Shown: positions 16,218 to 60,500, counted from the stretch's first letter. The stretch is DNA of 64,000 bases from Paragordius varius (GCA_964247055.1 OZ176050.1:5952001-6016000), one strand, 5' to 3'. Notes: a model not told the origin generated them from the letters alone. Translations and numbers: made by a program.

Positions 16218-19200
16218 ATGAGTGTGCCGATTCAAGAAAAAAAGAAAAAAAAGAAGTTAAAGAAAATTGAAATTCCTCAAGAGGAAACGGTGGATCAACA
16301 CAATGAAGTTTTAACGGCGTCTTTAGATGGAGAAGTTTTTATTTTATAAAATATAGACATCCATGTTTGTATTATACGAGGATGCTATCGGTTATGCCCT
16401 TTTTAGAATTAAACAATATGAAGAGATTGGGATGGCATTACTCACAGATCAATTAAGAGACAATTTATTGGATTATACCAAATTTATAAATACTGTTCAT
16501 TTGATTGCGTTTTCTCCATTTAAAAGTGCAAAAAATGCCTTAGAAAATATAAATTACATATCAGAGGGGCTTATTCATGAAGATTTGTATACCTTTTTGG
16601 ACACTTATTTGCCAAAACAGGCTCTTGCTGGCGAAATTGCCAAACATAAAAAGAAAGTTATGTTGGGTGTTTCAGAACAGAAATTGGGCGCTACTATAGT
16701 CGAAAATGAAGCCTTGAGAGCTAATTGTGTTTATTCAGGACTTATACCAGAGATTTTGAGAGGTATATCTTTTAAACTTTTATAATTATATTTAGACTAT
16801 TTGGCATTACAATTGTATGCATAAAATGCTTAAGCTTAATTTATAATTTTACCGGTATATATATTCATAATTAACACTTCGATTCGAATTGGGCTTTATA
16901 AATACCTCAGACTATATATAAGTTGATATTTTTTAAAAAAAACTGAACAAAACAGTTTCAATTATTTATGCTTCTATCCTAATAAAAATTATATAAATAA
17001 GCCGAAATATCTGAATAAAATTTAGTTCTGATAAAAATTCATTATTAAACTACATCGACGCGATTTTCAATATTTTTGCAAAATATCATGTTATTTTAAA
17101 TTTAAAGCTATAATTAAAGATATTAAAATTTCATTTAACATTTCCATTCGAATTGGGACTACCCCAGACTATATTTAAGTAGATATTTAAAAACTGAAAG
17201 AAATGATCCCAATTTAAATTTTTGCTTCTATCAAGCCAAAACATCTAAATTAAAGTTATTTTTTAAAAAAAGTTTCATATCAAACTACTTCGACGCCATC
17301 TTATTCATACAAAAATTTGTGAAATATCGATTTTATATAATTTTAAAGCTAATTATTATTTAAAACTACTCTAAATTGATGAAATAGAAAAAGTGGTTTA
17401 TTTTGCATTATTTTTAATTTAGTTAATGAACACATGTTGTGTTAATTAAAATTTTACCATTGGGTTTTACCTAAAATGAGTATTATCAGGTATTTTTATA
17501 TTTCGGTTCATTAATGTCATATAAGTACAAGCCTTTGTAATGGTTTCAATATCTTTTATATTTTTTGAATTTAATTTTAAACAGTCCTGTGGTATATCAC
17601 AACCCCAATTCGAATTGAAGGACTTGAATGAATGTGCTATATCCAAGTGTTTATCTATTTTATTCATTTGATTAGATTTTTGTAAGGGTAGCGTCAACAT
17701 TCACCGATTTTTTTATTTTATCAAATATAATAATTTAATAAATTACTATATTAAAGTATCAATTACCGATCTTATTTATAACTATCTTCTAGTATCAATA
17801 ACGTTTAGCGAAAATGTTTATATTAATCAATCTATTTTTACAATTATATCATTCACCATATATTTCATATTTCAACCTAGATGAATCAAATTAATATATT
17901 GAATAAAAAATATTTTTTTTAGTAAACTAATTTATCCAATTATAATTTTTTTAATAATACTCATAGGCATTCGTCAACATTTTACCAAATATTTCCGTAG
18001 GATGGACTCAATAACGGAAAGTAGCGATATATCGAAAGTTACCACGCTCGCTATTGATGCTGATAAGGAGGATAAGGCACAATTAGGATTGGCTCACAGT
18101 TATAGTCGAGCAAAAATAAAATTTAACGTTAACCGAGTCGATAATATGATAGTTCAATGCATAGCTATTTTGGATCAATTAGACAAAGATATTAACAAAT
18201 TTAGCATGAGACTTCGGTAAATACTACCCACATCTTTTTTTCTTATTTCACTATCGTTATTTTCCATATAAAACGAAGTGCTAATTTGGTTTGAGTTTAT
18301 TTCCATATTTTTAAATTAAGCTTTTGAAATGAATAGTCAAAAAGTTTGGACATATGTTTATCCATTGAAATATAATTATACTAGACTATGAAAACAAAAA
18401 AATATTGTTAAATAGTTTTTATTTTTAACTTTGCCAAAATATGTATATTTATTTGTGGTAAAATTTACAAATATACTAACTTCGTTATAAAATCATACCT
18501 CTTATCCCTTTTTGTATAAGTAGTGTATCATAATAAATGTGCGTATCAAAATAATGCAACACTAAACCAAAATATATTGTTAGAAATAGCATTTTCTAAT
18601 AATTCACTTTAATTATTAATAAAGGCCCATTTACCTAAATATTTTATTAGTAAATTTAGGTTCTTTATACATCGATCATTGTTGCAACAATTTATTTATA
18701 TTTTTAAAACTTGTCCCAATTTACATATCTATATATATATATATATTCAATAAGCGAATGGTATTCCTATCATTTTCCCGAACTCTACAAACTTGTACCG
18801 GACAATTTGACATATGCCAAGGTTGTCAAATGTATTGGAAATCGTAAGGAATTGTTTAAAAAAGCACATGCCGGCGACGATGAAACAAAAAGTGAATTCA
18901 CCACAAATTTTAAGGCTCATACTGAATTATTACATGAACAGTTGCTTGATTTGTTGAATAACAACGAAACTTTAGTTGTCAACATTCTCCAGATTGCTAA
19001 ATCCTCTATGGGTATGCTAAACTATAAATAAAAACATAACTTATTAAAAGGTTTACTCTTAATAGGGGAATCGTTAGTTTTGTCAAATGATGTTGTTTTA
19101 CATGCACAATATTATTATAATTCGTTTATTTTTTTGTTTTTTTACGAATAACCTATTTATTTAAAATATGAATTGGGTTAGTTAATTCTAAATAATATCT

Positions 19201-22200
19201 CTAAAATGTTACATATATTTTACAGAATACTAGTTACGGATATCTCATAATAAATTAGCTTTCTTAAGTATATTTATTCCATTTTATTTTGGTCGCACAT
19301 ATAATTTTTCACATCTTTTTACAAATTTTGTTGCATACATTTGCACGCAATATAATATTTTATTTAGGTATGGATATAAGCCCCATGGATCTCAATATGA
19401 TTACCAAATTTACTGATAGAATAATGGCACTTGGTGAATTTAGGCAAAATCTTAGCTTATATTTGACTTCCAAAATGAAGAGTGTTGCACCAAACTTGGC
19501 TGAATTGTTGGGCGATACGGTATATGAATATTTTTTTATATCAGGTTTTGGAATCAGAACTATTAGTTTTTTTTCAGCAACAAATAAAATGTTTAAAAAC
19601 GTTTTGGTGGAACCGTTTTACATTTTAAAACGTTAAAATAATTTTTGTTTTGATATTTTGTTTTACTATAATTGTTATTTCCATTTTATTTGAATCATGT
19701 TTAAGTTTTTTTTGAAAAAAAGTAGGATATTACAATCCTAGTTTTAATGCTTTTATTTTTGTATTATATATCCACATTATACTAAAATAACCATATATGT
19801 AAATTTTAAAAATGGGATTAAAATTCCAACCTGAAAGAATAAATTTGAGATAAAAATGATTTAAATGAGCTTTGTTAAATTTCAGTTCGGATTAGGTGAA
19901 TTTTTGTGCCTGGTTCTTTAACATATTTTTGCCAAAATAATTTGGAAAAAATTTGGTTTTGGCTCCAATGTTCTGTTCTCATTTCGTTCACAATTTTTTA
20001 ATTTTAAAGGGCCTAATTAATTTAATATAATGTGGTTAAAATGCCTGAAAATATACACATAAACAAAAATGTTATGTATGCTACAATTTCTGATTTTTTT
20101 CCAACGATTTGTAAAAGAATAGAAAATCAATCATTATTTACTAAAAACTAAATAAGTATAATCTAAACCGTTTGTAACACGATGTCCTAAAAACAATTAG
20201 CGTTTTTCGAACGGTTTCGGTTTTTACAATTCCATTAATCCTTGAAAATATAGCACAGAACTAAAGGATTATATATTATGAATTACTATGTAATTTCTAT
20301 GTATTTAGCTAAAGTCGTTGTCGATTTATAGCTTTTTAGTATGTAAATCTGCGCCAATTTGCTCTGTTGTAAGTAAGGGATATAAAATATTATATTGAAA
20401 ATTAATGTTTTAAGTTAGATTTTCCGTTCAACGCATTTTACAACGGTCGCGTTTTCTTCTACTTTACCTCTCATTATATAATATTTTAAATTTTGTCTCT
20501 AACGGTGTCTTCCAAATACGAAACTTTAATTTGAGACAATGAGAGCTATTGTGGGTTTTATTTTTTCGTGAACTACTGAATTTTATTGTCATGTTACTTG
20601 TTAAGTCTATACAGCCAAAACTATAGTTCCAATGCGTTTAATCTTGAAGTCTCATAAATAATATTAACAATCCTTAGATATCAAATACAAATTGCGATAG
20701 GAAAAATTAATGTGAAAAAATATGTTAAAATATGGAAACCAATTATTTTAGACTATGATCCAAAATTGGGCTAATCACTTGATTTTAAATGTTATTTGGA
20801 GCTAAAAACTGGATCATAAAACGCATTTGAATTATGGTGTTGGCGTTACTTGTAATTAACTAATCTTGTTTGCCTTTTAAAAATATTTAATTATATCAGT
20901 AACTATAATTTTATTTTGTTAACTCAATTCATTAATGTAGGTTAGTGCTCGACTTATCAGTCACGCCGGAAGTTTATCAAATTTAGCCAAATGCCCAGGA
21001 TCAACAATTCAAATATTAGGCGCTGAAAAAGCTTTGTTTAGGTAAACTTTGATAAATTATTTACCTTATATATATATATATATATATATAAATACGGATT
21101 TTACTATTGTTAAGAAACCAAAATTTTAAAGGGGTAAAACTTTAAAAAGTAAATCGATTTTACCCGTTTATTCCAAAACTGTGGCTTAATTAAAATTTCT
21201 GGTTGCATCTAAAAAATAATAATTTCGATGCTAAAAATTATATTTACAGAACTGATTCCAAATATTTTTGCTACGGATTACTAAAGCACTATTATCTCTT
21301 TTTTTGTAAAATACAATTAATTTTTTGTATTCACCAAAATGTATCCAACCAAAACCTGCTTCAAACAGTGAAATTTTTGAGTCGTTATTTGTCTCATTAT
21401 AAAATTTTACAACTCTAGACAACAAAGTTTTCCTGCCAAACGAGATTATTTAATCTCTGTTGCCTAATGGTATTATGATAACAAAAAATAAAAAAATAGG
21501 GATTGCTTAAGGATTTAAAAAATCCTTTTTTATAAAAGGCAAAATTTACAAATTAATCGAAGATTGCATCATATGTTAACATCATGAGCGTAAGACTATA
21601 AAAATATATGAAAATGAAAAACCTAAATTCTTATTATCGAAATTGAAGTTTAATAGCAAAATTTACCTGAGAGAGATCATTGCTAATAAATTATAAAAAA
21701 TGACAAATTGCATTGTTCTTTATAATAGATTTTTTAGATTTATTGAGCTTTTTGCTTTTATATGGTGTTTTTATATTCGATGTATTATTAATAAAAAATA
21801 TCATATAATATTTTCCTAGTGCATTAATGTTTGAATTTTTAAAAGAATTAGAATCGACAAGCAGGTATCTATGTTTATAACATAAAACGCAAACGTAAAA
21901 AACGATCCAAATAATTTATGCATATGTTGTAGAAGATGGATATTTTAATAAAATTAATTAAAATTAGGCAACATGACTAATCAACTTTTTTAAATATTTT
22001 TTAAGAAAAAATTAACTCAGTATTGCTTGTTGATATATTTTTTCATAAGTTTATCATAACAAATATCTATATTAACGCTATATTTCATATTTTATTATTC
22101 ATTTTTTATCATTGTATGAGAATATATAAACACAACTTCAGAAGCATTCACTTATTTTAAATATAAATCCACTCTAGCCAAATCAGGGGCCGGCGTGATA

Positions 22201-25200
22201 ACTGACCTATTAAAAAATATATTTACAGTAGCTTTCAATGAACTTTTGTTTTATAACGACGAAGCAATGATTGCTTGCAAAATACCAAATTTTTTTAAAG
22301 GTTTTTAAGCTATTAGTATGTCAATTTATTTATTTTCAAATGAGCATAAAAATGCATATTGACGAACATTTTGATAAATTCCGATTTAATTACAAATCAA
22401 GGTGGCATCAAAACTTGAGAAGATGTGAAAAGAGATACATACAATCATAAAATTATTAACATGTCTATTAAATATGAACTCATTTTACATAGTTTTATTC
22501 ATTTATAGTATATTATTATAATGAAAAATTTCACTTTTCAATCAATAAATTTAGTAAAAATACTTCTTTCTCATAATCTTTGCTGAAATAAATCATAAAA
22601 ATGACCAAAAATAGCCTTAATATGCATATTTGGCGTGATAAACTCATATATAAACCAGCGAAATTAAAATTTTATTCTTCAAAACATTAATTTTTATGTT
22701 CTTTTAATTTTTCGACGCAATTAAGCCATTTCAAATCCAATATGTAATTTTTTCTCCAACTATTTCTAGAAAAAATATTATGTCTTAAATTGGTTTGGGT
22801 TTTAATCATAAAACAGAAAGATGCTTAAACTTTTAGAAAAAAAGAAGCCGATACTTTAATCACTAAAATAATTATGTTTCCTATATGTTTGGAAATATCT
22901 ATACATGTTTGATATGAACTCCCAATAACCGAATTACAATATTATTATATAAAAAATATTTGCTGAAAGCTTGTACATATATAATTATATTTATTGGATG
23001 AGTTTTTTGCTTTATTTAATGATTAAGTTTTATACTATAATCCTCTTTTATTAAATATTTTTGAACAAGTTTCCCATTTTTAATATATAAAAATCGATAA
23101 AATCCGAATTTGCACAAAATCTATGATTGTAATGTCAAAACAAATTTCGGGTTTAGAACACAAAAAGGGTAAAAATTGTTGTCTATTGTTGAAATTCATT
23201 AATCAAAGCGCTTTAAACTACCAGTTTTTCGTTTGTCAAAAATTTCATTATAGGTCTTGTGAAATTGGGACAAAAGGCAGTTTTGTAAAAATCCATATAT
23301 TTGAATGAAATTTAAGCAGTACTTTTCAAACCTTTTTTGTATTGTTATATCTTGCCCTTTATTTTACGCATTAATTATAATTTAGATCACTCAAATCTCG
23401 CAGTGGCAAAACACCAAAATACGGGCTTCTATATCATTCCCCATTCATTGGTAAAGCTAATGCATCTAACAAAGGAAAGGTCTCCCGATTTTTGGCTAAT
23501 AAATGTGCTATTGCTTCTAGAATCGATTGTTTTTCTGGTATAATAACAATAATTTTTATACCGACTATTTAATTTGTTTTTTGGATAAAAAATATATTTT
23601 TAGTAGCGTTTATTAGTTGAGAAGTGTGTGGTTTGTTTATTATTTGGTTATTTCGTACACTAAAACACCTATCTAATTTAAAATCTCAAATTGTACCGAT
23701 AATGAAATATTATCTGTTTTTTAATCTATATTCTTAAATTTTTCCCACTCTGATACGTTAACTAATGGTTTCCTGATTGGTAACTAATCAATAAAGATTT
23801 AACATCAATATTGGCCTCCACCAGGGCTCAACACCAAGCCCCTTACTAATTGATTATATAATAAAGGACCCACCATGGAATATATTAGGTGATTTGATAT
23901 TAGCAATAAACACGAATTAAAAAGCTCATTCCTCCAATAGAGGAGATGATATATGCATAAAATCCATGCTCTATCTCTCACTCTGAAGTAAAAACAAATG
24001 CCATTTTATGTGCATCTTGTAAATTTTGGTTCATAGAAAATGCTCAAACATCAAGGGAAAATTGATTGATAACAATATGGATGCCAAAACTGCACACAGG
24101 GAAACCAAACATATTTACAGCACGGAGTTTATTATGGAAAATTTTAGGATCTTATGAATAATAGGTAACATAAATAATCATATTAACATAATAAAGATGC
24201 CTAAGCAATCATCTCGCATATAATGAAACTCGGCTGGCCATATTTAATCAATTCATATATTAACACATAAAGCATAAAAACGTAAAAAAATTAAAATATA
24301 TAAATTACATATACTTCCAACCCTGACATACGCCTACGAAACTTGAGTCATTAAATAATCACTAGAATTAAGACTAAAAAGAGAAACAGAATAGAAAAAT
24401 GCAAAATATATGGGATGTATTCCATTATAAAGAATTAGAACCAATAACATCGTTTATTGAAACAAATAGAATTCGCTACTTTGGCCACATAGACAGATAT
24501 AATATTGACTCATCTGCTAAATTGAGCTTGCCTTTAACCGAAAAGAGATAAAACACTTTGGTCGCCAACAACAAGATGTCAAAATTTTAAACATATCACG
24601 AAATGTAGAGAAATATCGTAAATTCCACTGAACCTCATTAGGGCTAACCAATAACATTTAAATTATCAATTATGTGAAAATAATTTTATCTTTAATTTCA
24701 TATTTTCCCTCTAATATAATTAATTTTTACAATATTATTTTAGATGTTGCTTGTCCTGTATACGGTAAGTTTTTAAAGGCTCAAGTTGAAAATCGCATAA
24801 AATATTTGGAAAACGATGGCGAGCCTCTTAGAAATTCTGATGTTATGGCAGAAGCTATTGAAAAGGTTGTATTTTTAGATTTTAACAAAACATTTAATTA
24901 GACAAGTTTAACGAAAATTTTGTTATATAGTTATTAGATAAATGTACCATAATTTTTAATAAAAATTGTGTAAATACAAATATGTCAACTTCAATAGATT
25001 TATTAGAATTAATCATATATAAAAAATTTATATATCTTTTTATTTCGTTCGAAATTATTACTATCCATAATTAATCTTTTTATTATCCGTAGGTTATATA
25101 TTAATTTTAACTTTTACCTTTCATAGGCACGTGAATTTGCTCAAAAAGCTGAGATAAAACAAATACCAGCACCTGTAATTGAGATTGAGGCTAAGAAGAA

Positions 25201-25618
25201 GAAAAAGAAAAAAACTATTAAATCCGAACCCGAATCGGCTGTACTCAATGGTAGTAGCAGTGATACAAAAGATTTCCTATTAAATGGTGATATTCCAAAC
25301 GATTTTAATTTATCGATTAAGGCCGAGGATGGTGCTTCTGGTGGAGCCGAAGGTGCAGAATCTATTGAAACTGCGTCCAGTGGGAAAAAGAAAAAAGGTA
25401 AAAAACGAAAGCAATTAGAAAATGGTTATTTAGTTTCTGCCCAAATGAATAATAATGATCATCAACTTGATCAAACGTTAATTCAAATGAACGGACATGG
25501 TGATGAAAAGGTTATGTTCTCTAGCAGTAACAGCGTGAAAACCGAATATACATGTACGGACACATCTTCTTTGGAAGTGAAAAAGGTTAAAAAGAAGAAG
25601 AAAATGGTTGCAGTTTAA
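16218..25618 (+). CDS. NOP56: Nucleolar protein 56 (box C/D snoRNP core)
   Basis: Exons [16218-16334], 16357-16762, 17967-18216, 18755-19011, 19368-19519, 20941-21041, 23386-23537, 24744-24865, 25127-25618. Motifs [134 protein letters not shown], and a K-rich tail. The first exon depends on a 22-nt intron; otherwise the start is ATG 16363. Confidence 0.96.
16335..16356 (+). other. Putative 22-nt GT-AG micro-intron (NOP56 intron 1)
   Basis: GTTTTTATTTTATAAAATATAG. Removal fuses the upstream ORF from gccATG 16218 in frame to TSMFVLYE. Retention gives TAA at 16347-16349. Confidence 0.7.
16875..17649. mobile_element. Two tandem copies (16875-17134 partial, 17139-17649 near complete) of TTAA-associated MITE family E in NOP56 intron 2
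   Basis: TTAA-CACTTCGATTCGAATTGGG and TTAA-CATTTCCATTCGAATTGGG starts; shared GCTTCTATC core; homologous in reverse orientation to 28290-28851 and 34557-35079. Confidence 0.75.
23790..24600 (+). mobile_element. Decayed RTE-clade non-LTR retrotransposon fragment (RT C-terminal half) in a NOP56 intron
   Basis: Translates with stops and frameshifts to [25 protein letters not shown] (cf. VGLHQGSALSPLLF/PWELLYADDL), [15 protein letters not shown] (cf. LLYGCETW) and [13 protein letters not shown] (cf. RLRWFGHV). Boundaries approximate. Confidence 0.8.
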
Positions 25619-25645
25619 AATTAGCGAATTACTATAACCACTGTC

Positions 25646-25650
<5 letters not shown>

Positions 25651-25704
<54 letters not shown>
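25651..25704. repeat. (AT)n microsatellite downstream of the NOP56 stop
   Basis: Uninterrupted AT run of about 54 bp. Similar runs at about 21067-21090, 31646-31701 and 41636-41663. Confidence 0.95.
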
Positions 25705-25707
<3 letters not shown>

Positions 25708-26990
25708 TAAATCATGTGTAATCCATACATTAATTTTGGGTTGTAAATCGGAATATTATATAAATTTTGTATTATTTTTTGTGTTATTTATCCATATAAA
25801 ATTTCATAAGTGGATCAATACCAATGTGACCATAATGGAAAGTTTAAAACATTACTTATTATCATGTTAGTTCTTTTGCAGATTACCTACCTTGAGTTGT
25901 AATACCCATTTTTAGCTAAATGTGATTTCGTGAACATTATTAATGCCTTTTTAAAACTAGATATTCATAAAAATATTTATTAATATAAATCAACTAAAGT
26001 AATTAGTGAGTATTGCTAATTTATGTTTTTTAACGTTGTAACATTAAAATTTAAAAAATCTTGGGATATTTGAGACTTGATTGTATTAAAACAAATGTTT
26101 ATAAAACAATCCTTTTACTTAATAGTATTTGCTATGAAAGTATATTCTAAAGGTATGTTTAGTAAAAATATAATATAAAGCTAAAGCGTTACAAAAACCA
26201 TAATTTTAGACATTTGATTTATTTGAATTAAATGGTCACCATTGACGTATGTTCATAACTCTTAAGATTCTTTAAAAAAAATACCACCCGGTGGCGAGTA
26301 AAAATTACTTTGAAAGTTTTTTTCTAAAATAAGTGCACATATACACAGTGCACACAAAGAAAATATTTAACAAATACGTTTGGTTTCGGGCATTACGAAC
26401 CATTTAAAAATAATATTTCCACTTTTGTGGTAATTGATATGCTTATTTTAAAGTATTTTTTGCTGATATAATCTAATATACATATAGTAAAATTCGCGAA
26501 ATCTCGGCATTGCGTATTTAAGAGAATTAGCACATATAAATGGGCCAAAAAAATGAGATCGGAGCCCACATTAATAAATTTATAAATATTATATTTTGCT
26601 TTTTAATTATTCTATGTGATCTATTTTAATTATATTTTTTGGTGAAACATTCATTTAGCTTTCGCCAAAAAAATATTTAGCATAAGTGCGCATGCGATTT
26701 TCCGATATGGAGGAATGACCACAATCCTATTAACTTTATTATATTACTCGTAAAGCCAAAAATCGTTAGCACTGTAAGAACTCTGATACATTTAATTATA
26801 GGAATATAGATATGTCATCAGAATATTTTTTATACCCCTCGATTTTGTGCGCAGTGTCTATTGTCGACAAAAAGCCTAAAAGATGGTTATACCAGCTTTG
26901 CCCAAGACTAGGGTAGGCTTTAAAAATTTTTAAAAGTAGTGTGACCCATTCTAATTTCATTATAATACTGGGTTTTGAATACTCCTAGAG

Positions 26991-27164
26991 CAGGAGTGAT
27001 CAACATGCTTTTTTCCTTATGCAAAATGCTCTAAAAATGTAAAAAATAAAAAAATGGATTTTAATAAAAAATTTATGATTATGTTGAAGATATAACATCC
27101 GAAATTGAGCTCAAAATAAATAAATAATTAGAAGCCGCGAAAATATTTGTGTTGGACACCCCTG
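26991..27164. mobile_element. hAT-type MITE (family C)
   Basis: CAGGAGTGATCAACATGC ... TTTGTGTTGGACACCCCTG. Flanks TCCTAGAG/CCCTAAAG (6/8, degenerate TSD). A further solo right end lies at about 29641-29675. Confidence 0.7.
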
Positions 27165-28289
27165 CCCTAAAGTGTAATGAAGATTTTTTGATTTTCTGAA
27201 TTTAAGGGCCACCGTCATTTAAATAATTAAAGTAATAATTGTCCCATAATCAAGTATTTTTGGAAAATATATGTTCGCCATTTAATTGTTTATTGATATT
27301 TTGTTTTGCGCAATGTTTGATGGCGTTCAAGGATAGCCCCTCCCCTACAATAGGCTAAAAAAGAGTTTTTATAGCAAGTCACGATCATTAAAAGACTAAA
27401 ATACGATCAGCGCCTTTTAAATTATAGGTGATTTTAAAAAAACCAAAATTTTTAAAAACGCGAGATTTTGAATACATGCGGCCCTCCGAGACTTTATGTG
27501 CGGCCGGCGAAAACTTGGAAATCCATAAATTATAATATGATCACAATCTATATATTTATAAAAATGGAAAGTGGTGGCTTTGTGATCTGTTTCCGGTAGT
27601 CCCATTCAAATCCAAACGTCTAAAAAATATAATCATTAATGAATGCCCGACAATAGCTTCTCCCTTTTTTGAATTAGGCTCCCATTTCGGGCCTACCCCG
27701 TGTATAAAACGGTTTTTTTTGAAAACAGAAGTCCACAAAAATCGAGTCTTTGAGACAATTTTCCGGAAAACGTGCCATTCGATTTCTAATATAATTTTTT
27801 TTATTTTTCGATTGCGCGGAACATAGTCGGCTCGCTTTTTTAGTTTAGGCCCTCTTTTTACTGGCTCTCCCCGTAAAATGCCATTTTTTTTCAAAAAAAC
27901 TGTCCACAAAAATAATTTTTTGAATCGATTTTTCGCTTAAGGTACGAGACCGTAAAAATTTAATAAGGATTCCTGGTATTTCCTGTTAAAAGACAAAAAT
28001 TTTAGTCGAGTGTTTTTTTATATTGGCTGCCGGGTAAGGAGATATCTGCTAAAAATTGACCCGTCATATTGAAATAGCGTGCCTTTGGGGCTAAATTTCA
28101 AAAAATCCATCAGGCCATATCAGTTTAATAGCTTCTTAAAATATTACCCGTAATAAGGCAAAAATTTAAGTCGTGCGGTTTTTTAAAATTAGCCGTTAAT
28201 TAGGCCCTTGCCCAGAAAAATGCGCCACCATAGAAGATCTCAATTTCGTTAAGCCTTTTTTTCAAATACCGGCTTCGCAGGCCCCTTTA

Positions 28290-28851
28290 CACTATGTTTG
28301 CCACAGTAAAATCTCATTTCAGTCCTTCTATTCAAATTGGGGTAGTTGGATACCCCAGACCTATATAAATTGAATACTTTAAAAAATATGGAAGATATCG
28401 AAACCATGGCAATTGCGTTTAATATAACATTAATAAATATAAATATATAAAAAATTTTATTCAAAAATACTGTATTACTTACATTGATGTGAAACCCAAA
28501 GGTAAAAATTTTGTCGACGTAACATGTGTGCATTGGCTAAATTGAAAAATTAACCGCTTTTTCTATTTCTTATGAATGTTAGATGTAATTTAAATAAAAA
28601 ATTAGCTTTAATTTTACCTTTGAAATTAGATGAACACGATATTTTCAAAAAATTTCTAAAATAAAAATGGAAGTAGTCTGACATGGAACTTTATTTTCAA
28701 ACTGAAATTTTATTTAAATGTTTGGCTTATTTAGATAATTTTTAACAGGATAGAAGCATAAATTTAAATTGGGACCGTTTCCTTCAATAGTTTTTTAAAA
28801 ATAATAATTTAAATTTTGTCTGGGTTATTTAACCTAATTTGAATCGAAGTG
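28290..28851. mobile_element. TTAA-associated MITE family E
   Basis: Colinear along its length with 34557-35079. Ends CCTAATTTGAATCGAAGTG-TTAA. Left boundary approximate. Confidence 0.8.
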
Positions 28852-31303
28852 TTAATACAGAAAATTTATTTAGCAATTATAATTTAATACAATAAACTGC
28901 CAAATTGATAGGTTATGGGTATAAAACTACTCTAAAATGTTATCAAAGATGATTTTAAATATTTACCCTATATAGGCAAAAAATTTAACTCAGCTCTTTT
29001 TACCTGTAGAACTATGGGAAGGGGGCCACTGGTTTAAAACTGAGACGCCATACAAAAATGGCGTGGTTTTGGAGCTAATTTTAAAAAACTCTTAAGAAGC
29101 CATACTAGTTCAGTTAAACACATTTCCGGGGCATTTGCATAATATATCATTCCTTCCTTTAAAATGGGACCATAAATTACTTTATATCCCTTGATCCCAG
29201 TTGTGTGAACACAATTTCAAAATAAAACTTTTAACCATGATTTCGTAAAACGAAAATCTTAAAATAAATCCAATGATAGTTGAATATTAACTTTAATAAG
29301 GCAGTTTAAATATGGTTGATTTCGAGTAATCAATATTTAAGCCTATGCAATAACCCGTAAAAGAATAATTAAAGGCATTCTTATTATTAAATATGTTTTT
29401 TATTATTTTTTATCTCCATTACCTCTATTTACAAATCATTAAAAATAATTATCGGTGAGACTACGTCACAGCAAAGCGTGACAGAGCCAGCAAGTGTACT
29501 AATAAAATAGATATTTACTATATAAATTTTACTAATAAACCTATCCAATTGGCAAGAACTAAAAAATTTCTATATTGTGTTTGCATTTTACAGTTTTATG
29601 CTTGATATTATCCTTACAAATGTCCATATATATTTCGAATGCGGCCAGAAAGGCCATTTGTGTTGAGCACCCCTGGTATAAATAATACAAACTGTATCGG
29701 TTAGATTATTTTTAAAAGATTGGTATAATTTTATAATAAATATTAATTTTAATTATAACCGCCTAAAATTCACAATAATATTGTAGCCGCTTATTTAACC
29801 ATAAATATGACCTATATCTAATAAAAATATTTTAATATAAAAAATATATGTCTTGATTATTGGTTTATTGATTAGTAAATGATAGATAACCACATGATTA
29901 AAATAATTTATAACATTTAAAATATGAGGTATGTTTTTATAGTAAAACCAAATGTATGTGTATCTTTGATATAATATAGAAATGTGTGTGGTGCGTAATT
30001 TAGTGTGTTTCCAAAAAAAACAATTATGTTAAAGTATAAAAAAATGCTTAATTACGGCAATATTTAATATATACCATATTATACTGTAAATTTTTTATTG
30101 ATTACAAAATAAACTTACAGTAGCGTATGACATAAAACATTAGTCTATAAAAAAATGTTTTTTATTAAACAGCCCTAGTTGTATATACACATATCCATAA
30201 TATCATCCCATTTTTTAAAAACCATTTTTTATTCTATTATGGACTTCCAAACGCTACTGTATATTAATAAAGCATTGTCCATGAAAAATGTTCCTATAAG
30301 AAATTTTTAACGCTTAATATTAACCTTATCATTAAATTAGATAAGGCTTTCTGTTATTATCTATAATAGTATTAAGTAGTTTCAACAATTTTATGCTACC
30401 TTTATTATTGAAAAACACATAATAATGGACGCATAAACAACTTTTATCTGTTAAGTATATATTTTTATCCTAATATGTTGCCTTTATTTCTTTTTTGCGC
30501 TAATAAACCATGCATTATTATTTTAATGCATAGTCATAAATTGTGTCATCAATTTATTTATTAGTGTGACACACTTAATAACTTTAAAAAAAGATTTAAA
30601 TTTAATTATGTCATCATGAAAGATAAAATATGATTATTAAAACACTGTATAAAAAAGCGGTAACCGTTTATGTTGGACAAAGCTATTAATAACTAAAAAT
30701 ATTAATAAATCTGCCTTAGTTTTAAATAAAGAGACGCCTATATCTTTTTCAAATTTGGTGGAACATAGAAGCTCGGCTGTTGTTTCAACTTAAAAGCGAT
30801 AAAATAGTAGTCATCACGGTAAATGAATACAATATTGATAATAAATCGATTTAAATTTCATTATTAAAGGTCAATTATTATTCAAAATAATTAAGATGGG
30901 CTAGTCATATCCATCGTAGACGCCCAAATAATATAATGTATCACTAGTTAAAACCTGGCTCTTCTAAAAGTGGCTTAGTAAACTTTGATTTTAGACAAAA
31001 TGTAGAAGAAGCGGAAAATGAATAACTATATCAATCGAGCTATCTTTAACTTTGAGTACCCGTGGTATGATTATATCAATTGATATTTTTATGGATCGCA
31101 CACCTGTTATATTTTTTAATTTTTTGCGTGATAAACAATATATATCAAAGAACCTTTCAATCAAAAATTGTGAAAAAAAACTATCAGACAATAATTAAAT
31201 GATATTATATTGACCAATAGATACCAATATAATCAATATAAAACACTATTAGAGTACGTTGCAATCTTAATATTTGGATTTAAAAGTATGCCAATGCCTA
31301 AAA

Positions 31304-31643
31304 CAGTGGTACTCAAACCGCGGCCCGCGGGCCGCATGCGGCCCTAAGAGGGATTTAAAATTGCCCTTTGACCATATTGATACTTAAATTATTTTTTTAT
31401 TGATAATTTTTTTTAAAATACACTTTAACGAATTTTCGCTTATTTTATATTAATTTATTTACTTTAGATTTAATTTTGGTAATTGTTATTTTTTACCCAA
31501 TTCGAAATGTAGAAAAATTTGCCTACATTAAAATGATTTTAAAATTTTGGCGCACGTTGTTTCTGTATTCTATTTTCTTCTCTATTTTGAAATTTTTATA
31601 GCATTCTTTTTTTGTATTTAAGCAAGCCTTTCACCAAAACTTG

Positions 31644-31705
<62 letters not shown>

Positions 31706-33778
31706 CTTTTCATTGCTATCCTGCATCATTATTTATAACTCATTCCCATAAAATATTTTTCAAATTAACATAATTAAATTTCGGCCTGTTTTTTATAGTA
31801 TATTTCAAATTATATTCCTATTTTTTGGAAAAATTTACTTTTAATATGATGACATCTAATACTAAAAAACTTAAATTATCCGATGAAAATCGCTCCTTCA
31901 AAAAAGAATGGCAAGAAAAATTCTTTTTTGTTTTAAATTATATTACCTGCCTTATATGTAAGGACAACATAATTATAAAAAAATACAATATTGAAAGACA
32001 TTTTACAATCCAAATTTCTCATAAATTAACAGAATGCGGAAAACGAAAAATACAAGATTAAAGAATTATACCAAAAAGAAAAATCTATTATGCCCATGGA
32101 TTTCTCCCAGGAAAACGCTCTAACATTAGCTTCGTATGAACTATTATTTAGATAAAAATATAAAACCATTCCCAACTAATAAATGGTTGCACTTTTTTAT
32201 TTGATAAATTCCATAATAAAGATCAAAACATGAGGCAAATTAAAAAACTTACATTCTGATTCAATCGACGTATTGAAGATATGTCTAAATATATTTTTAA
32301 CAATACATTATTGGCTCTGAAAAACTGCAAATATTTTGGTATTGCTATTGATTCTAACACTGATATTAATTCAACACCTCAATGTGCGCTATTAGTGAGA
32401 TTTTGCAACGACAACATAATCAACAAAGATTATTTAAAATTTTTACCAATGAATAATACCACGAAAGAAAGTTTTCACGAAATAAATAGCACTTTTTTCG
32501 ATAATTATATTATATCTATAATAAAATTGGTTTCGATCTGCACTGATAGCTGTCCCTCAATGATAGGAATAAAAAAAGGATTTTTTTAAAATCAAATAAT
32601 TTGCAAAATATTTTATCCTTTCACTGGGTTATTCATCAGCAAAACTTCGTTTCGTGTGTGAAAAAATCGCTTCATTCAGTTAATAAAACGGTTGTGTATA
32701 TAGTTAACCGCATCCGTTGCAGAAAATTCAACCGCTGTTTCAAAAACCTTTTAAAAGATATCCACAGTGAGTTTGATTATATTCTTTTGTACACCGCTGT
32801 GAAATGGTAAGCCTTAGTAAAGTATTAGAAAGATTTTCTGTAAGACATGAAATTCTAATTTTTAAAAGATAACAGAAGGTTTGACGAGGAAATTAATAAT
32901 GACAAATGGTCGGTTTTATTAGACCTTTGCGACATTACTTATAAACTTATTTTTAATACAAGTTCAAAGGAGCAAAATAATAACCCAATTTGCTAACCAT
33001 ATATTTGCTTATGAAGAAAAACTAAAATATATATACAAGATTTTATAAATTAAACACCCCTATACAACACTTAAAACGATTTATGAAGAAAATATGGAAT
33101 TTAACGCGGAGATTAATTTAATATTGGACAATCATTTAACATTTTTATAATGAAATTCAGATTTCAAAAGAAATATTAAAAATTGCTTAAAACTCGTTGA
33201 AAATACATGGCATATGGATATATCCAATATTAAGCAACTTGAGCATTTCGGTTTTGATCAGGCGCATTTCATTGATGAATTCGAAGATTTTAAATGATTC
33301 CAATTTGTGGCCCTATTCAAGGAAAATCGTAGGGAAGAAAGATATGTAGAGTTTTGGCAAGATGTGCCAAATAAATATGAAAATATAAAAAAATGTGCTC
33401 AAGTTATCCTAACTTTTTCCTTCAACTTACACGTGTGAGAGGGCATATTCAAAAATGAAGTATGGAAAGAATACACACAGAAACCTAACCGATGATCTTA
33501 TGGACAACTTTGTAAAATTGGCCTGTCATGAGTCGAAACCAAATTTGAATTACAGGTTAATGTCCAATACCGTTGTTAAAAAATATTTTATTTTTTAAAT
33601 GGTGCAAAACTTTTTAGCTGGATTATGCGATCCGCAAAAACCATTGTGCTAATTTAGAGTATAAATATGTGCATATGTTCAAATAGCTATGGAATATTTG
33701 CCATTATAAGGTTCATGGCCCTCGAAAAAAAAAATATATTTTATTTGGCCCGTCAATTTTTTTTGGTGAGTACCACTG
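31304..33778 (+). mobile_element. Full-length but decayed hAT DNA transposon (Buster/SPIN/Charlie group; GTF2IRD2/EPM2AIP1-like transposase)
   Basis: TIRs CAGTGGTACTCA / TGAGTACCACTG. Perfect 8-bp TSD GCCTAAAA at 31296-31303 and 33779-33786. Broken transposase: ENRSFKKEWQEKFFF..TCLICK..KKYNIERHF, FGIAIDSNTDIN (first catalytic D), SICTDSCPSMIG, FHWVIHQQ, C-terminal TYTCERAYSKMK..RNLTDD. Many stops and frameshifts. Confidence 0.95.
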
Positions 33779-33854
33779 GCCTAAAATTACTAAGTGCTGC
33801 ATAAGACACAAACATAGTAAAGTTGAATTTAATTTATACACTACAAAATTCAAA

Positions 33855-34471
33855 TTATTTTTTATTGCGATTCCGGACAATAACCCATTCATCATCACTT
33901 GTTAATGACTCAGTAGCTGAATCATCATTTGTTATAGCAGAGTCATTGGATACTGGATTATTATTTGATATATCAGGGTTTTCGGTTATCAGAGAATTTT
34001 CGGGCATCGTAGAATTTTCGGGTATCATAGAATTTTCGTTGGTAACTTCAGATGTTTCGGTTTTCTTAATATTTAAAATATTTATACCACAACTATTTTG
34101 GTTGATGAATTTTTAGCCCGTTGGGAAAGGAAATTTTCCAACTGTGATATTTCATTATCCTCAAATAGATTAAATACCACTCTTATATCAGAAGCTATCT
34201 GAGACATTAAAATAAAATACCAACTCCAAAGTTTTATCTTGAATAAGCGTATTAAATTCATATTCTATAATGTCCTCCAAAAAATCCATTACTTCATGCA
34301 AGACAATAATTTCTAAATTTTATTTAAAAACAAACCATCTTTGAAGGCATTGTAAACTTCCTTACTGAGATAGGAAATAAAATCAGATTTCTTTACTCGC
34401 TTTTCACTTTGTTCTATTGCAAGAGTTAGTGAAGGCCAGTTATCCAGTAGAATATATAATGCGCCTTCCAT
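33855..34471 (-). CDS. TSR2: Pre-rRNA-processing protein TSR2 homolog (182 aa), 4 exons separated by 23/22/23-nt introns
   Basis: Exons 34471-34336, 34312-34221, 34198-34088, 34064-33855 give MEGALYILLDNWPSLTLAIEQ...LHEVMDFLEDIIEYEFNTLIQDKTLELIASDIRVVFNLF...(acidic/low-complexity)...SDDEWVIVRNRNKK*. Matches the TSR2 family pattern (W-P-x-L-x-x-A, EVEDFL...EFDTVVEDGS, terminal W-x-x-V-R/K). Not in the supplied ORF track. Confidence 0.9.
34065..34087 (-). other. 23-nt micro-intron, TSR2 intron 3 (an alternative donor at 34093 gives 29 nt in the same frame)
   Basis: GTATAAATATTTTAAATATTAAG. Retention gives an immediate TAA. Confidence 0.8.
34199..34220 (-). other. 22-nt micro-intron, TSR2 intron 2
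   Basis: GTATTTTATTTTAATGTCTCAG, phase 0, between ..TLEL and IASD.. Retention causes a frameshift and stop. Confidence 0.88.
34313..34335 (-). other. 23-nt micro-intron, TSR2 intron 1
   Basis: GTTTGTTTTTAAATAAAATTTAG, phase 1. Retention reaches an in-frame TAG. Confidence 0.88.
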
Positions 34472-34556
34472 GGACTACTCTTCAGATGCGTGTATTGTTA
34501 AGTACATGTGGTTTTAACAAAGCGTGTACGAATGATTTTCCTAAAATTATTTTTAA

Positions 34557-36523: not shown

Positions 36524-36988
36524 TATATAAAACTACCCCAATAAATACAAAAATCATGAAGCTAGATATTTTAGAAATTTTGTCTCAATAAGATTGTTAA
36601 TAAGATAGAGGTATAAATTTAAATTAGACTGCCAATTTAAGTACTTTCATACCGCATAAAGTCCACAAAAAAATTCTTGATATATATATATATATATTGC
36701 GACCAAAATGGGGCGGTATAAAATCTATATATTTTTTGATAGGAAAATGTGTCAAAATTATATTGTTGTTTTTGGTTTGTCCCATACCAGTAATTTAAGA
36801 TATTAACACTTTCTTCATGATATTTTTAAAATAAAGGATTTAACTATTATCTATTTAACATAAAGTGATTTAGTTTAGCGATATCTCGACATAAACCAAT
36901 TACCTCGTGTAAATATTTTTCTTATTTGTAAGGCCCAAAACCAAAAGCAAGCACCTTTGGAATCCTTATACATTTATCCATCAGGATT

Positions 36989-37019
<31 letters not shown>

Positions 37020-37208
37020 CATTTCCCAGTCAAAAAAACGTTTTCCCAGTCAAACGTACCATTATCCCAATCAATCGAAACGTTTTCCCAGTCAATCGAA
37101 ACATTTTCCGAGTCAATCGAAACATTTTCCCAGTCAATCGAAACATTTTCCCAATCATTAAAAACGTTTTCCCAATCAATAAAAACGTTTTCCCAGTCAA
37201 TAAAAACG
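37020..37208. repeat. Minisatellite, 9 x 21 bp (consensus TTTTCCCAGTCAATCGAAACR)
   Basis: Contiguous units with no spacers. It explains the FSQSIET and IDWENV pseudo-ORFs in the ORF track. Confidence 0.95.
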
Positions 37209-37562
37209 GTTTTATATTTAATGATAAATATCAAAACAAGATAAACATTTGCTTACATATTACGCATCTCAAAATCAGGAATAAATCATATCTTGTTAAA
37301 TTATATATCTTCTAAAAAAATTACGATCCTCATGGTGCAGAAAGTTTAGCGGGTAATAAAATGAAAATTAATACAAAAAGTTGCTTGAAGTTAAATATGG
37401 TGGTGCATTTTACAGAAGATAGAATCAGCGGAATTTAAAAAGCGTGTGCTAAAATTATTGCCTTTATGGGAATAGCTAAACCTGTTGATTTATAGTATCA
37501 CTCTGCGAAAAACTGTTTCAAAAATTTATTACATTATGCATTTTAATGCATGTTATACTATA

Positions 37563-37669
37563 GTAGGGTAATTTGCAACACAGCAGTGTATGGAAAAAAC
37601 ATCAAATTGTTGAATAAACCATTTTTCCTTTTTTTCCAAAAACTACTTACTGTGTTGCGAATTGCCTAC
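37563..37669. repeat. Small TA-flanked inverted-repeat element (~107 bp)
   Basis: GTAGGGTAATTTGCAACACAG ... CTGTGTTGCGAATTGCCTAC, with TA on both sides. Confidence 0.6.
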
Positions 37670-38167
37670 TAAAGTGTGAAATAACAACCATTAAAATGCC
37701 TATGTAATGGGGTCTTTCCTTTGCAGAAAATGTTATTATGCGGGGATAACGTCTAAATACCGGTGCTAAATTCAAATAATTATCCTCATGTTAATCACAC
37801 ATCCTAAAAATATTTTTTTGATGATTGAATTTGAATGGGCATACTTTTTTTCCAGAAACTCGGAGATATGTTTTTCGGGGCTTCTCGTTTTTAGAACCCA
37901 TTTTTCACACGTTATATATTTGTTACTTTCATCTACATTGTATCAAAATAATGAGCTTCCCCTAAATTTAAATAAGTCGAACGAATCCATTTGACTGAAA
38001 ACAAGCCCTGATTAGTGAATTGATTTTTAAACCATTCAAACTTTACAAAAATGTATCTTTCCAAATTAATCTACCATATAATTTATAATCAAATAAATAC
38101 ATTTATTTTTAAATTAGAATTGTATAAAAGTAAAAAAATGGGCTGTTTATTATAATCTTTAATTGCT

Positions 38168-40821
<2,654 letters not shown>

Positions 40822-41632: not shown

Positions 41633-41670
<38 letters not shown>

Positions 41671-43243
41671 GCGCTCATCTCAAATACTTTATAAAAAAAG
41701 CTAACCTATTAAGTGGTTTTTGTCGTAAAACGAAAGTATGGTTTACTGTTATGAGGTTATCATTGTTTTTTACTTAATGCATAAATAGTTGGAATGAAAT
41801 AAATTGTAACTTATATAATTAATCGGATTAAAACTTTTTCAACTATGTTTTAGTTTTAAATAAATTAAAAAGGAAAATATGTTGCTTATTATTGGGTAAA
41901 ATAGGGATCCCTCCACACTATAGTTTTTATTTTTTGTAAATCTAATAGTTAAGTTTAAAGCCAATATCCTAGTAATCCATGCGCACAAATCTTATTTCGA
42001 AAAACTTGGAAACAGAGAATTCGAAATGCAAAATGTTCAGCTGTTTTCTACAAGAACTGATATATTAAACTGTGTATAATTCATTGTTTTTCATATATTA
42101 ATTCATACTGTTTCACATTTTTTTGCAATAATAAGATTTCAACAAGAATCGATATTTTTCCATAGATATTTTTTAAATATATTTACTACTTAAATAATAG
42201 ATTTTATGATTAACATATATAACAATGCATATTCGAGAAAGCTCATAAGCTAAATTATAATGAAGCTGTAATTTGAACTCCAACTCCTCCACTCCGTTTC
42301 ATATTTTTACGGATAGAAAAACGTGCTAATATTAAAAAAATATTCATTGAACTTTTATTTTTAATAAATATATGGATGACAAGTGAATTACTTAAATGTA
42401 TATTGAAAGAAATAACAGACGATTACTTTTTTTAGGAAGATGGATAAAAAATAACTTTTTACAATTGACAAATATTAAAAATTATGGACTATAATTAAAT
42501 TAAAGATGCTTATTCTAAAAAAACGTTTTTTATAATTTAGCTAAGTTGTTTTAAAATTCTATTACAAGGATCTAAAAAAACTCCGATGACTAAAATATAT
42601 AGTTTGAGAGGCATGGTTTCTAAATAAATAAATTTCGATAACCCTAAATTTAGGTGTAGGGCCATTAAACCATTACAATAATTAGCGATTTCACATTTAT
42701 AGTCAATCAAATGAGCCAGTTCTTTAGTTAATCATTAAAGCAAATACTCACTAAAAGCTGATAATTGACTAGTGTTATTTCATCTAAGATAAAAAAATAT
42801 GTTTTTATCAATCATAGTACCGAATACAACCCTTTATAAATGTTTGTTTTAAAATATCTTATATTTGAGCATCGTTAAATAATAATTGCCTACTTTGATA
42901 TACTAATGTGCACAATTGATTTATATTAATTTATAGGTTAATTGGTTTATGGCATACATTTTACCATCGGAAGTTTGTTTAAACGTAATTGTACCAATAA
43001 AAAATATTCTGTATACTAATTAATGTATATGTTAGTAATCAATGAGTATTCACTATTCACTACAATAGAGAGTAGTTTTATTTATTAATGGTATAAATGT
43101 AGTAGACATATAATAATTATCACATTTCCTTTAGATTGTTTCATGGTTTCTTTGTACAATTATAAGACAAAATATGATATATATTTAGATAATACTGTAA
43201 TCTAAGTAACATTTATAATATCACGAGGGAGAAAAAAATATGT

Positions 43244-57490
<14,247 letters not shown>

Positions 57491-57553
57491 TTTATTCGTA
57501 GATCGGCAAATTTCTCACCAACAAGTGACTTTAAACGATTATGCTGAAACCAG
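57491..57553. promoter_or_regulatory. 63-bp spacer between the divergent PI3K and CYB5R4 start codons (bidirectional promoter or overlapping 5' UTRs)
   Basis: PI3K ATG at 57490-57488 (-), CYB5R4 ATG at 57554 (+). No promoter motifs were identified; the call rests on geometry only. Confidence 0.55.
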
Positions 57554-60500
57554 ATGGAGTTAAAGTCCGATGTAGTTCAATCCCGATCAAAAAAGCGTGA
57601 AGGTAAACCCTTATACCAATGGATCGCTTTTAGCGCTAGTAATCGCGATTTATCGTCATGCGCAAAGAAACCACCGTTTGTCACATCTGAAGAACTTGAT
57701 AAACACAAATCGATTTCAGATTGTTGGATGTGTCTTGGAGGTTTGTGATATATTTATACAAACATATAGATAAAGTATATAATTTGACTCCCTATGTGCA
57801 ATTTCATCCTGGCGGTATATCCGAATTAATGCGAGGAGCCGGAAAAGATGCAACTTCATTATTTTTTGAAGTATTATTTAAAATCTATGAACAATATATA
57901 AATTTATGCCATAATATTTTATATATTATTTTAACTTCATTTATAGGCACATAAGTGGGTAAATTATGACCAAATGTTAAAAAAATGCTACATTGCTCCA
58001 TATCGAAAAACCAATGCAATTACCAGAAATTCTCTTACTGTTTCCGCCATACCATTTGATATAAGTATATTAAAATATTTTTTAATTCATATTTATAGCA
58101 TGCTTTGATATTAAACCTTTCTACCATATATTTAAACAACTAAATTATTTTAGAATCTGCATCGTTTACTACTTCTCCGTTACAAAATGCAATAGATGAT
58201 GTTGACACCTCAACCAAATTAATGTAAAAATTTTAGCATTAATTCACGGTTCAATAACACAAATTAAAATAATTGTGGATTATTTTACTCTTTTAATTTC
58301 TTTAATTTCTTGTTATAATCAAATTTAATCAATTATTAAACCACAATAGGCGATTATATAAACAACATTTCAAAATTCTACGTATAGTATGGTTGTTATG
58401 GCAAAAATTGGTTTGTATATAATAATCTAGAACATTCTTGTTACATATATTTTTGCAGAAGTTACGAGATTTATGAAAAACAACGACGCAAAATATTAGT
58501 GCCTGATCAAACTAATAGCACTCAATTTGATACTCTTGCCTTAATAATCAAGCCTACAAATCATCAGTTAACATTCCAAAAGGGTTTTGTTTCCCAACTC
58601 AATGGACAAATATTTTCTTTTCTTTGTTATCTTAAGGATTTGAGATATTGTATCCATATAAGTATACTGAAAATAATTATCTTTTTACGATGGCTCAGTT
58701 TATTACATATTATATATAATTATTTATATACATTTTTCACTAAAGACTTTGTTTATCATTGAGACAGGTTTTAATTTACATAAAATAAAAACACAACTAT
58801 TTTTTTCTTTTAAGCAGAAAATATTCGTTTGTTATTAATTGCATATTGAATTAACACTTACAACAAAGGTTTTTTACTCTAGATTTTATTAGACCACTTT
58901 ATTTAACATTTATATTATAATCTAATTTTTCTAGAAATTTCCAATCAAATCCGAAACTATTGTAAAGGTAATGCATGTTTAACACATTTTTCTTGCAAAA
59001 TCTTTTACTATAAACTCTTTTTTGTATAATAGTTAAATGGGAAAATATGGATTTAGGCACGCTTGAAATAAATTTTTATTATACGAATCCTTATGATGAC
59101 AAAAGTTTCAACTATAGATCACGGACACCATCTCCAAACGGTTTGTAATCATAAAATATATATATAGACTATTTTTTTATTGTTTAAAAAATCAATTATT
59201 AATTTTAATATATATATTTATCTTAATGGCTATATTTCTTACAGCTCTTTAATTTATCTTTTATAATATAATTACGATTATAAAAAAATGTAAATAATTT
59301 TTAATCATTATTTAAGTCCACATTACATCTTTGTTTTTATAAGTATATATAGGGTTAAATTTAAAAAGCTTGGATTTGTAATACTTATTGTGGTATACAT
59401 ATCACATTATTTATTATAGATACAGCCATTTTGGCATATTCCATTTTTTATTTACTCTGTTTCTTGAAGGCATCCTATATCTATAATTTTTCTTTAATCT
59501 AATGATGCCGGTATTAATATATTGTTTAATGACAAAATATTTTAAATTTAAGATCCTATTAAGGAGGTTATTTCTTTTTTACAGTCATATTAAATTTACG
59601 ATTTTATTATGTATTGAAGTTTATATATGCTTATTAATTTACCTTGCAATAACAACACAACTTTCGTAATCAATAGTGAGAATGCAAAAATTATGGCCAT
59701 TATATGAATAAAAATGTTGTTTTTTATCAAAACCGTTGTTGTTATAAGTCAGGATATTAAGTGTGCATCAAGGTTGGGTTTAAGTCTAAAATTAAACACT
59801 CGATTAATTAATTTCAAGCAAAAATTTATTTTGTCCCCAAACGGGAACATTATGAGAAAGGGATCTACCGTATTAGTTCCCTCCTTATAATAGCCGCTTC
59901 AATAGTGGTAAACGCAAACGATTTTAATTTTAAAACCAAAACCTTTAGGACCCTACTTGGAAATTGGAAAAGTCAATTATAATCATGACTATTTTTTTAG
60001 AGGCCAACAGAATTTTATAAATAACTTATAGAAACTGTAACAAAACATATATGCTAAATAACTGTTTTAAACCTTTTATGACATTTACATCACATAAAAT
60101 CGTCCTATAACGACTAGCCATAAACTTGTATGCAAAAATTCTAATTTATGCCAAAATTCCATCCATTCAATCAATCTTCTATTAAGGAGATGCGAATTTT
60201 TATACAATTTAAAAAAATTCTTTAACATGGTTAACAAATTTGTTGTGTACGAACTTTATTTAAAAATCGAATGTTTCCAAAAAAATTAAGAAGATTAATA
60301 ATTAAAAAAATAACTATTTATAGAACAAACAAATAAAATCCAAATTTAATAAAGAAAACATGGCTTACCTCGAAAAAAGGTTATCAATCATAAAGTAAAA
60401 CGAAGAATATAAGTAAAATTGTTTAAACAGAACTAAAAGGATAAAATTTGATGAAAACTAACCTTAAAAGTATAATCTCCTTAATTAAGGTTTTATTTAC

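Follow-up and report, generated by a model that had tools for sequence, protein, structure and literature searches.

Probable spliceosomal introns of 22 to 29 nucleotides beside conventional introns in a 64-kb stretch of the Paragordius varius genome

Results

Short GT-AG segments in four genes of the window

The window analyzed here is a stretch of 64,000 nucleotides (nt) from Paragordius varius (GCA_964247055.1, OZ176050.1:5952001-6016000), which has a G+C content of 24-37% throughout and contains ordinary animal genes, among them NOP56, TSR2, PI3K (class I p110), and CYB5R4. Six very short GT-AG introns had been predicted in these genes (22 nt in NOP56, 23, 22, and 23 nt in TSR2, 22 nt in PI3K, and 29 nt in CYB5R4). 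All six segments were read directly in the sequence, and their lengths and GT...AG ends were confirmed. The five segments in TSR2, PI3K, and CYB5R4, referred to as micro-introns in the following, are probably genuine U2-type (GT-AG) spliceosomal introns that have shrunk almost to the shortest length that can be spliced, about 22-23 nt; the class extends up to 29 nt. The same genes also contain conventional introns, from 66 nt to several kilobases in length, and transposon debris is present in many of these. The five had been regarded as necessary for a continuous protein, which is borne out by homology for CYB5R4, PI3K, and TSR2 intron 1, and by the reading frame only for TSR2 introns 2 and 3.

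The micro-intron of CYB5R4

The 5' part of CYB5R4 comprises the following features:

57554..57740, + strand: CYB5R4 exon 1, start codon at 57554 (PDB 3lf5_A)
57741..57769, + strand: CYB5R4 micro-intron 1, 29 nt, phase 1, GT...AG (spacing compared with PDB 3lf5_A)
57770..57870, + strand: CYB5R4 exon 2, core of the cytochrome b5 domain (Pfam Cyt-b5, E = 1.1e-10, profile positions 21-53; PDB 3lf5_A)

Residues 43-61 of exon 1 correspond to residues 8-26 of 3lf5_A, the solved b5 domain of human CYB5R4, and residues 2-34 of exon 2 correspond to residues 30-62. The three intervening residues correspond exactly to three codons: the last of exon 1, the one split by the intron, and the first of exon 2. 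The spacing to the human domain is free of gaps only once the 29 nt are removed. Ten different 29-nt deletions are possible between the two anchors; a single one has GT...AG ends, whereas about 0.02 such deletions would be expected by chance. A 38-nt alternative would remove three residues of a conserved strand.

Two conventional introns of CYB5R4 were measured exactly (76 and 89 nt). The 34-nt segment at 58065-58098 was considered as a further micro-intron and discarded because the 89-nt intron, extending to 58153, gives a sensible frame instead. A 28-nt segment at 62978-63005 lies inside a CYB5R4 exon, the unspliced frame of which was judged to be coding from its resemblance to human CYB5R4. 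A 23-nt segment at 59145-59167 was dismissed as well, since the frame downstream of it consists of non-coding sequence with 14% GC.

The PI3K micro-intron occupies an old intron position

Exon 1 of PI3K encodes an adaptor-binding domain of the p110-alpha type. The features of this region, read on the opposite strand, are as follows:

57049..57490, - strand: PI3K exon 1, adaptor-binding domain, 147 amino acids (aa) (PDB PIK3CA chains, E = 1.6e-20)
57027..57048, - strand: PI3K micro-intron 1, 22 nt, phase 1, donor GTATCT (junction spanned by the profile domain)
56820..57026, - strand: PI3K exon 2 (profile positions 116-188)

A profile was built from full-length homologues found in a search of representative proteins. 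The exons follow each other in profile order, with exon 1 at positions 1-99, exon 2 at 116-188, and exon 3 at 187-269, and the spliced product of exons 1 and 2 aligns as one domain straight through the junction. Exon 2 alone gave no match in PDB or Pfam. The gene is otherwise intact over more than 20 exons. A 22-nt segment at 45193-45214 was rejected as a second micro-intron of PI3K, because it is merely the acceptor end of an intron of about 1.5 kb.

Several database fragments lose PI3K homology at one common residue. The intron position was therein compared in two genomic contigs of animals, one from a JGI metagenome (3300027599, L001) and one from an ENA metagenome (ERZ25069853, L003, 340 kb):

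PI3K locus of L001: donor CTC A/GTACGT, phase 1, intron of 1,168 nt
PI3K locus of L003: donor ATA G/GTAGGT, phase 1, intron of 2,301 nt
PI3K locus of the window: donor TTA A/GTATCT, phase 1, intron of 22 nt

The micro-intron lies in the aligned codon and in the same phase as the introns of both contigs. The shared codon and phase argue that it occupies an old intron site, at which the intron has shrunk about 50- to 100-fold. Both contigs are sizeable pieces of animal genomes carrying prokaryote-style gene calls on single exons, and they are useful for checks of intron position.

The start codons of PI3K (57490, - strand) and CYB5R4 (57554, + strand) diverge with 63 nt between them. Either the two genes share a very compact two-way promoter, or their 5' leaders are minimal or overlapping, or a leader is obtained by another route; it must be one of these.

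Three micro-introns in TSR2

TSR2 is a compact gene, all introns of which are short:

33855..34471, - strand: TSR2 gene, exons 34336-34471, 34221-34312, 34088-34198, and 33858-34064, followed by the stop codon
34313..34335, - strand: TSR2 micro-intron 1, 23 nt, phase 1, GT...AG (flanking exons colinear in the Pfam WGG profile)
34199..34220, - strand: TSR2 micro-intron 2, 22 nt, phase 0, GT...AG (sole frame-restoring GT..AG candidate at this site)
34065..34087, - strand: TSR2 micro-intron 3, 23 nt, phase 0 (two further in-frame donors would make it 26 or 29 nt long)

Splicing out all three segments yields an open frame of 181 aa in four exons. Exon 1 covers positions 4-44 of the Pfam WGG/TSR2 profile and exon 2 positions 52-75, and the alignment is continuous within one residue across intron 1. 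If the introns were retained, translation would meet a stop after 7 codons (intron 1), 10 codons (intron 2), or 1 codon (intron 3). For intron 3, three in-frame GT donors share one common acceptor and give lengths of 23, 26, or 29 nt, an uncertainty of one or two codons in the protein. The exon after intron 3 had been described as a conserved C-terminal exon; exons 3 and 4 matched no Pfam family and no PDB entry. These two exons presumably resemble the human protein, a likeness that we take as a lead and not as a test.

The TSR2 region was also compared with contigs derived from sequencing reads. One sequencing run (X1) contains all 60 of the 60 31-mers sampled across TSR2, as well as a fraction of 0.74 of the words from a mostly non-coding stretch of 5.9 kb. 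Since the run also covers mostly non-coding DNA, it represents DNA, and the intron-containing form of TSR2 is present in read-derived contigs. X1 may be the very sample that was assembled. The complete recovery of the sampled words indicates that the DNA form of TSR2 is not due to an assembly gap or error. Three other runs (X2, X4, and X5) contain 0.53-0.75 of the TSR2 words, a proportion that does not tell spliced RNA apart from DNA with patchy coverage or sequence divergence. Words of the window DNA are also present in sequencing runs labelled as four other organisms, as parasite DNA might be.

Open reading frames (ORFs) resembling hAT/ZBED-type transposases adjoin TSR2 at 31800-33600 (+ strand), which fits the DNA-transposon-rich genomes of horsehair worms. 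The published Gordionus genome has a G+C content of 26.9% and consists of repeats to 63.8%, with DNA transposons as the majority. The low G+C content of the window and its hAT-like and retroelement fragments are consistent with such a genome.

Features shared by the short segments

The A+T content of the six segments is 77-91%. Their lengths (22, 23, 22, 23, 22, and 29 nt) include no multiple of three, and the retention of any segment leads to a stop codon 1-13 codons past the end of the exon. The combination of these two properties suggests that unspliced transcripts would be non-productive. The donors of the micro-introns are GTA or GTT. In six of six segments, the ninth position from the 3' end (-9) is an A, which lies within a run of A that is usually TTAAAT; the background is rich in A+T, the number of cases is six, and the pattern was noticed post hoc. 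The chance of finding GT...AG ends at the exact frame-restoring position is about 2% per junction, and such ends are present at all five junctions.

With regard to position, the first intron is the short one in PI3K (out of about 22 introns) and in CYB5R4 (out of at least three), and all three introns of TSR2 are of this kind. In this sample, which with six cases is too small for statistics, the short class is enriched at first intron positions, as in parasitic flatworms.

The short segment upstream of NOP56

The sixth segment differs in its relation to the protein:

16335..16356, + strand: candidate GT...AG segment of 22 nt, separated by 6 nt from the downstream NOP56 start codon (conserved protein complete without it)

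The original prediction included it as an intron on the basis of phase and position. The match to the NOP5NT profile begins with residue 2 of the ORF whose start lies at 16363, from which it follows that the segment is not needed for the conserved protein, and the upstream Lys-rich ORF of 39 aa has no family match. As an intron of the coding region, the segment was therefore not confirmed; it lies upstream of the conserved start codon. The chances are about even that it is no coding-extension intron at all. It would then either belong to an unspliced 5' leader, in which it terminates an upstream ORF, or provide an AG with a different role, for example that of a leader acceptor. In agreement with this, the upstream ORF stops inside the segment if the latter is retained. 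On the other side, the segment matches all features of the five supported ones (22 nt, 91% A+T, the A-run from -6 to -9, a length not divisible by three), and its removal brings an upstream ATG in frame with NOP56.

The start codons of NOP56, TSR2, and CYB5R4, but not that of PI3K, are preceded by an AG either directly or within 6 nt (16357, 34474, and 57553). This could reflect chance in a sequence of such composition or an acceptor placed just before the ATG.

Conventional introns and other elements of the window

For comparison, about 33 other introns were measured or estimated, so that together with the five micro-introns about 38 were examined. In NOP56, three introns were measured exactly (1204, 538, and 356 nt), and the remaining ones were estimated at about 1420, 2340, 1200, and 250 nt. 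The profile chain of PI3K implies about 22 introns, of which the first alone is short and the rest range from 66 to about 1590 nt; those measured exactly are 145, 66, 77, and 68 nt long, and the others were estimated at about 190-1590 nt. Two of these are listed here:

51053..51118, - strand: PI3K intron of 66 nt, the shortest conventional intron measured
44461..44528, - strand: conventional PI3K intron of 68 nt with a TACTAAT motif resembling a branch site

No intron of 30-65 nt was found among the approximately 38 examined in the window. Short introns account for five (or six, if NOP56 is counted) of them, and the others range from 66 to about 2,340 nt. Two separate size classes hold in this small sample. 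The bimodality that had been proposed is thereby recovered with respect to the gap at 30-65 nt, on a basis of about 33 other introns and not of the roughly 70 originally given. The short introns do not form the bulk of the introns in the window, in contrast to Myxobolidae and Dicyemida, where the median intron length lies below 30 nt. None of the well-supported introns in the window has a GTC donor. The side-by-side occurrence of micro-introns and conventional introns in the same genes, likewise part of the original prediction, stands for the five segments supported by homology or frame, with a conserved position for one of them, and does not extend to NOP56.

A fragment resembling a reverse-transcriptase motif lies within a NOP56 intron (23790-23920, + strand) and represents transposon debris of the kind found in long introns. 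A gene ending in a smoothelin-type calponin-homology domain is located at 38100-39400 (- strand); its last two introns are conventional, with about 125 and 200 nt as judged by eye. A block richer in G+C (36%) at 6800-9500 (- strand) contains ORFs resembling the RNase H and integrase parts of a long terminal repeat (LTR) retrotransposon, which are broken by stops. At 36900-37300, a tandem array with a period of 21 nt is open in several frames on both strands, and its translation consists of repeated FSQSIET-like units. Rfam and tRNA scans of the window returned nothing, and no small nuclear RNA (snRNA) or splicing-factor gene was found in it.

Discussion

Splicing as the probable explanation of the short segments

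On the basis of the exon alignments and reading frames, the five segments of TSR2, PI3K, and CYB5R4 are best explained as introns that the major spliceosome would remove from the pre-mRNA via a GTA/GTT 5' site and a 3' AG. The branch point would probably be the A located 9 nt from the 3' end, usually in a TTAAAT-like run. The class may have arisen by the collapse of ancestral introns, preferentially at the 5' ends of genes, while introns that took up transposons would have stayed long.

Several observations weigh against this explanation. No homologous family or structure anchors TSR2 introns 2 and 3, which are supported by the restoration of the frame into a plausible 181-aa protein. The branch-point pattern rests on six cases and the 5'-position pattern on three, and both were noticed post hoc. 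In a mechanical scan based on ORFs only, in which A+T-rich GT..AG segments of 18-64 nt joining two open frames were compared with control dinucleotide pairs, the GT..AG segments were no more frequent than the controls; the support for the micro-introns consequently comes from homology and not from counting. Neither a transcript nor a close relative of these genes was found in protein collections. A search for homologous proteins returned nothing for PI3K exon 1, the CYB5R4 exon 2 ORF, or NOP56 exon 1. The best identity in an exhaustive search of representative proteins was 56%, which means that the collection holds no close relative. No close relative of these genes appeared in a scan of metagenome contigs either, and none of the sampled words of the window was present in the sequencing runs labelled as possible RNA. 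Finally, an alternative PI3K intron of 55 nt with the donor at 57081 and the same acceptor scores practically the same as the 22-nt form (107.3 and 106.7 bits, respectively).

This last point leads to the view that the introns are real and some of their boundaries are wrong, with 55 nt for PI3K and 26 or 29 nt for TSR2 intron 3, where three in-frame donors share the acceptor. We consider this unlikely. The 55-nt form requires a donor of the GTC type, not seen in any well-supported intron of the window, and deletes MLDYQL, the counterpart of the conserved MLNYEI that stands just before the shared intron position in L003. CYB5R4 and TSR2 introns 1 and 2 offer no such alternative, so that the class of micro-introns would remain even if the boundaries were shifted elsewhere.

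An origin of the segments as mistakes of the assembly, or as insertions that disable decaying copies of the genes, is very improbable. It is favored by the fact that TSR2 is the sole region compared with read-derived contigs and that the case is known from DNA. Errors or random insertions would have to produce GT...AG ends at the frame-restoring position of all five junctions, each at a chance of about 2%, in genes that are otherwise intact over more than 20 exons; moreover, the PI3K segment lies at an ancestral intron site, and X1 holds every sampled TSR2 word. The least probable explanation, to which we give hardly any weight, is germline-limited DNA that is excised from the somatic genome like the internal eliminated sequences of ciliates and not removed from RNA: the size range overlaps that of the shortest eliminated sequences of Paramecium, and X2, X4, and X5 hold just 0.53-0.75 of the TSR2 words, but the ends are GT...AG and not TA...TA, other animals have an ordinary intron at the PI3K site, and the fraction of words that X2 contains is much the same (0.73) for the 5.9-kb stretch of mostly non-coding DNA, so that its missing words look like incomplete coverage and not like excision. 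No germline DNA-excision system of the ciliate type is known in this group.

Comparison with known short introns

Spliceosomal introns of this size have precedents in animals. Among 51 animal genomes, introns shorter than 30 bp were found only in myxobolid myxozoans, with medians of 22-27 bp, and in Dicyema (PMC13644364). The median intron length is 27 bp in Henneguya salminicola and 22 bp in Thelohanellus kitauei and Myxobolus rasmusseni, and where myxozoan introns measure 22 nt, neither U2 snRNA nor U2AF appears to depart from the canonical form (PMC13644364). Introns this short are thus spliced in animals, and because the myxozoan components look canonical, the distinct mode of short-intron recognition or the modified spliceosomal components that had been proposed for the present genome would not be required. 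The precedents listed with the original prediction had omitted both the myxobolid myxozoans and the parasitic flatworms.

The introns described here resemble those of myxobolids in being canonical GT-AG introns of less than 30 nt in an animal, with a modal length of 22-23 nt, and in occupying, at least in PI3K, a position at which other animals have long introns. Further traits in common are a run of A before the AG with weak conservation, a polypyrimidine tract that is absent or nearly so, and a parasite as the host of the introns. In myxobolids, the tiny introns are the majority, and the genomes are compact and poor in transposons, whereas here they amount to about 5 of 38 and stand beside transposon-bearing introns of kilobase size. 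Myxobolids are cnidarians, while the lineage studied here is probably an ecdysozoan worm, and their introns are supported by Iso-Seq, whereas ours are known from the DNA sequence. Dicyema japonicum (Dicyemida) is likewise an animal lineage with introns below 30 nt and with reduced splice-site motifs (PMC13644364), but its short introns are dominant genome-wide, in contrast to the two separate size classes of the window.

In parasitic flatworms, intron lengths are two-peaked, with a short peak at about 32 bp that is concentrated at intron positions 1-2 (PMC4040987). The peaks of Gyrodactylus salaris lie at about 32 and 58 bp, and tapeworms are also two-peaked (PMC4040987). The arrangement in the window is similar in that a short class exists beside introns of up to many kilobases, that 5' positions are favored (in PI3K, CYB5R4, and TSR2), and that the hosts are parasites. 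It differs in length, as the short peak of the flatworms is about 10 nt longer and lies above 30 nt, and their 58-nt peak falls into the gap of 30-65 nt observed here.

Tiny introns are also a feature of protists, with about 20-35 nt in Paramecium and 15-16 nt in Stentor, and they occur in the nucleomorphs of chlorarachniophytes, too. A narrow length peak near the physical minimum is common to these systems and to the micro-introns. In ciliates, the lengths of the tiny introns tend not to be multiples of three, or the introns contain stops, which makes their retention non-productive; the same holds here. Unlike the case studied here, these organisms are protists and not animals, and nearly all of their introns are tiny. 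The internal eliminated sequences of ciliates are distinguished by TA at both ends, where the segments of the window have GT...AG. Taken together, the case combines a myxozoan-like intron length with a flatworm-like layout of two classes and a 5' bias in a different phylum.

Significance

A search of the accessible literature found nothing on intron length in Nematomorpha. It is possible, although this is put forward tentatively, that the lineage, which is probably Nematomorpha, is the third animal group to have acquired introns below 30 nt, independently of the other two, and the first one within Ecdysozoa. In contrast to the compact genomes of myxozoans and dicyemids, its transposon-rich genome would then hold two classes of introns. 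One class, of 22-23 nt, would be set by a length ruler and concentrated towards the 5' side of genes, and the other would be conventional, with at least 66 nt. If confirmed at the RNA level, the class of introns below 30 nt would extend to a large bilaterian worm with a free-living stage and a repeat-rich, uncompacted genome, which would argue against tiny introns as a mere by-product of genome shrinkage. A single spliceosome acting on 22-nt and kilobase introns of one transcript would also be a natural system for studying the pairing of a 5' site and a branch point about 13 nt apart.

Common aligners and gene predictors have a minimum intron length at or above the size of these introns. If the tentative assignment is true, gene finders and orthologue checks that make no provision for introns of 22 nt would fragment or overlook genes like TSR2. 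Since the introns lie at or below the minimum length of such tools, gene sets, orthologue completeness scores, and claims of gene loss for the phylum may need to be re-checked.

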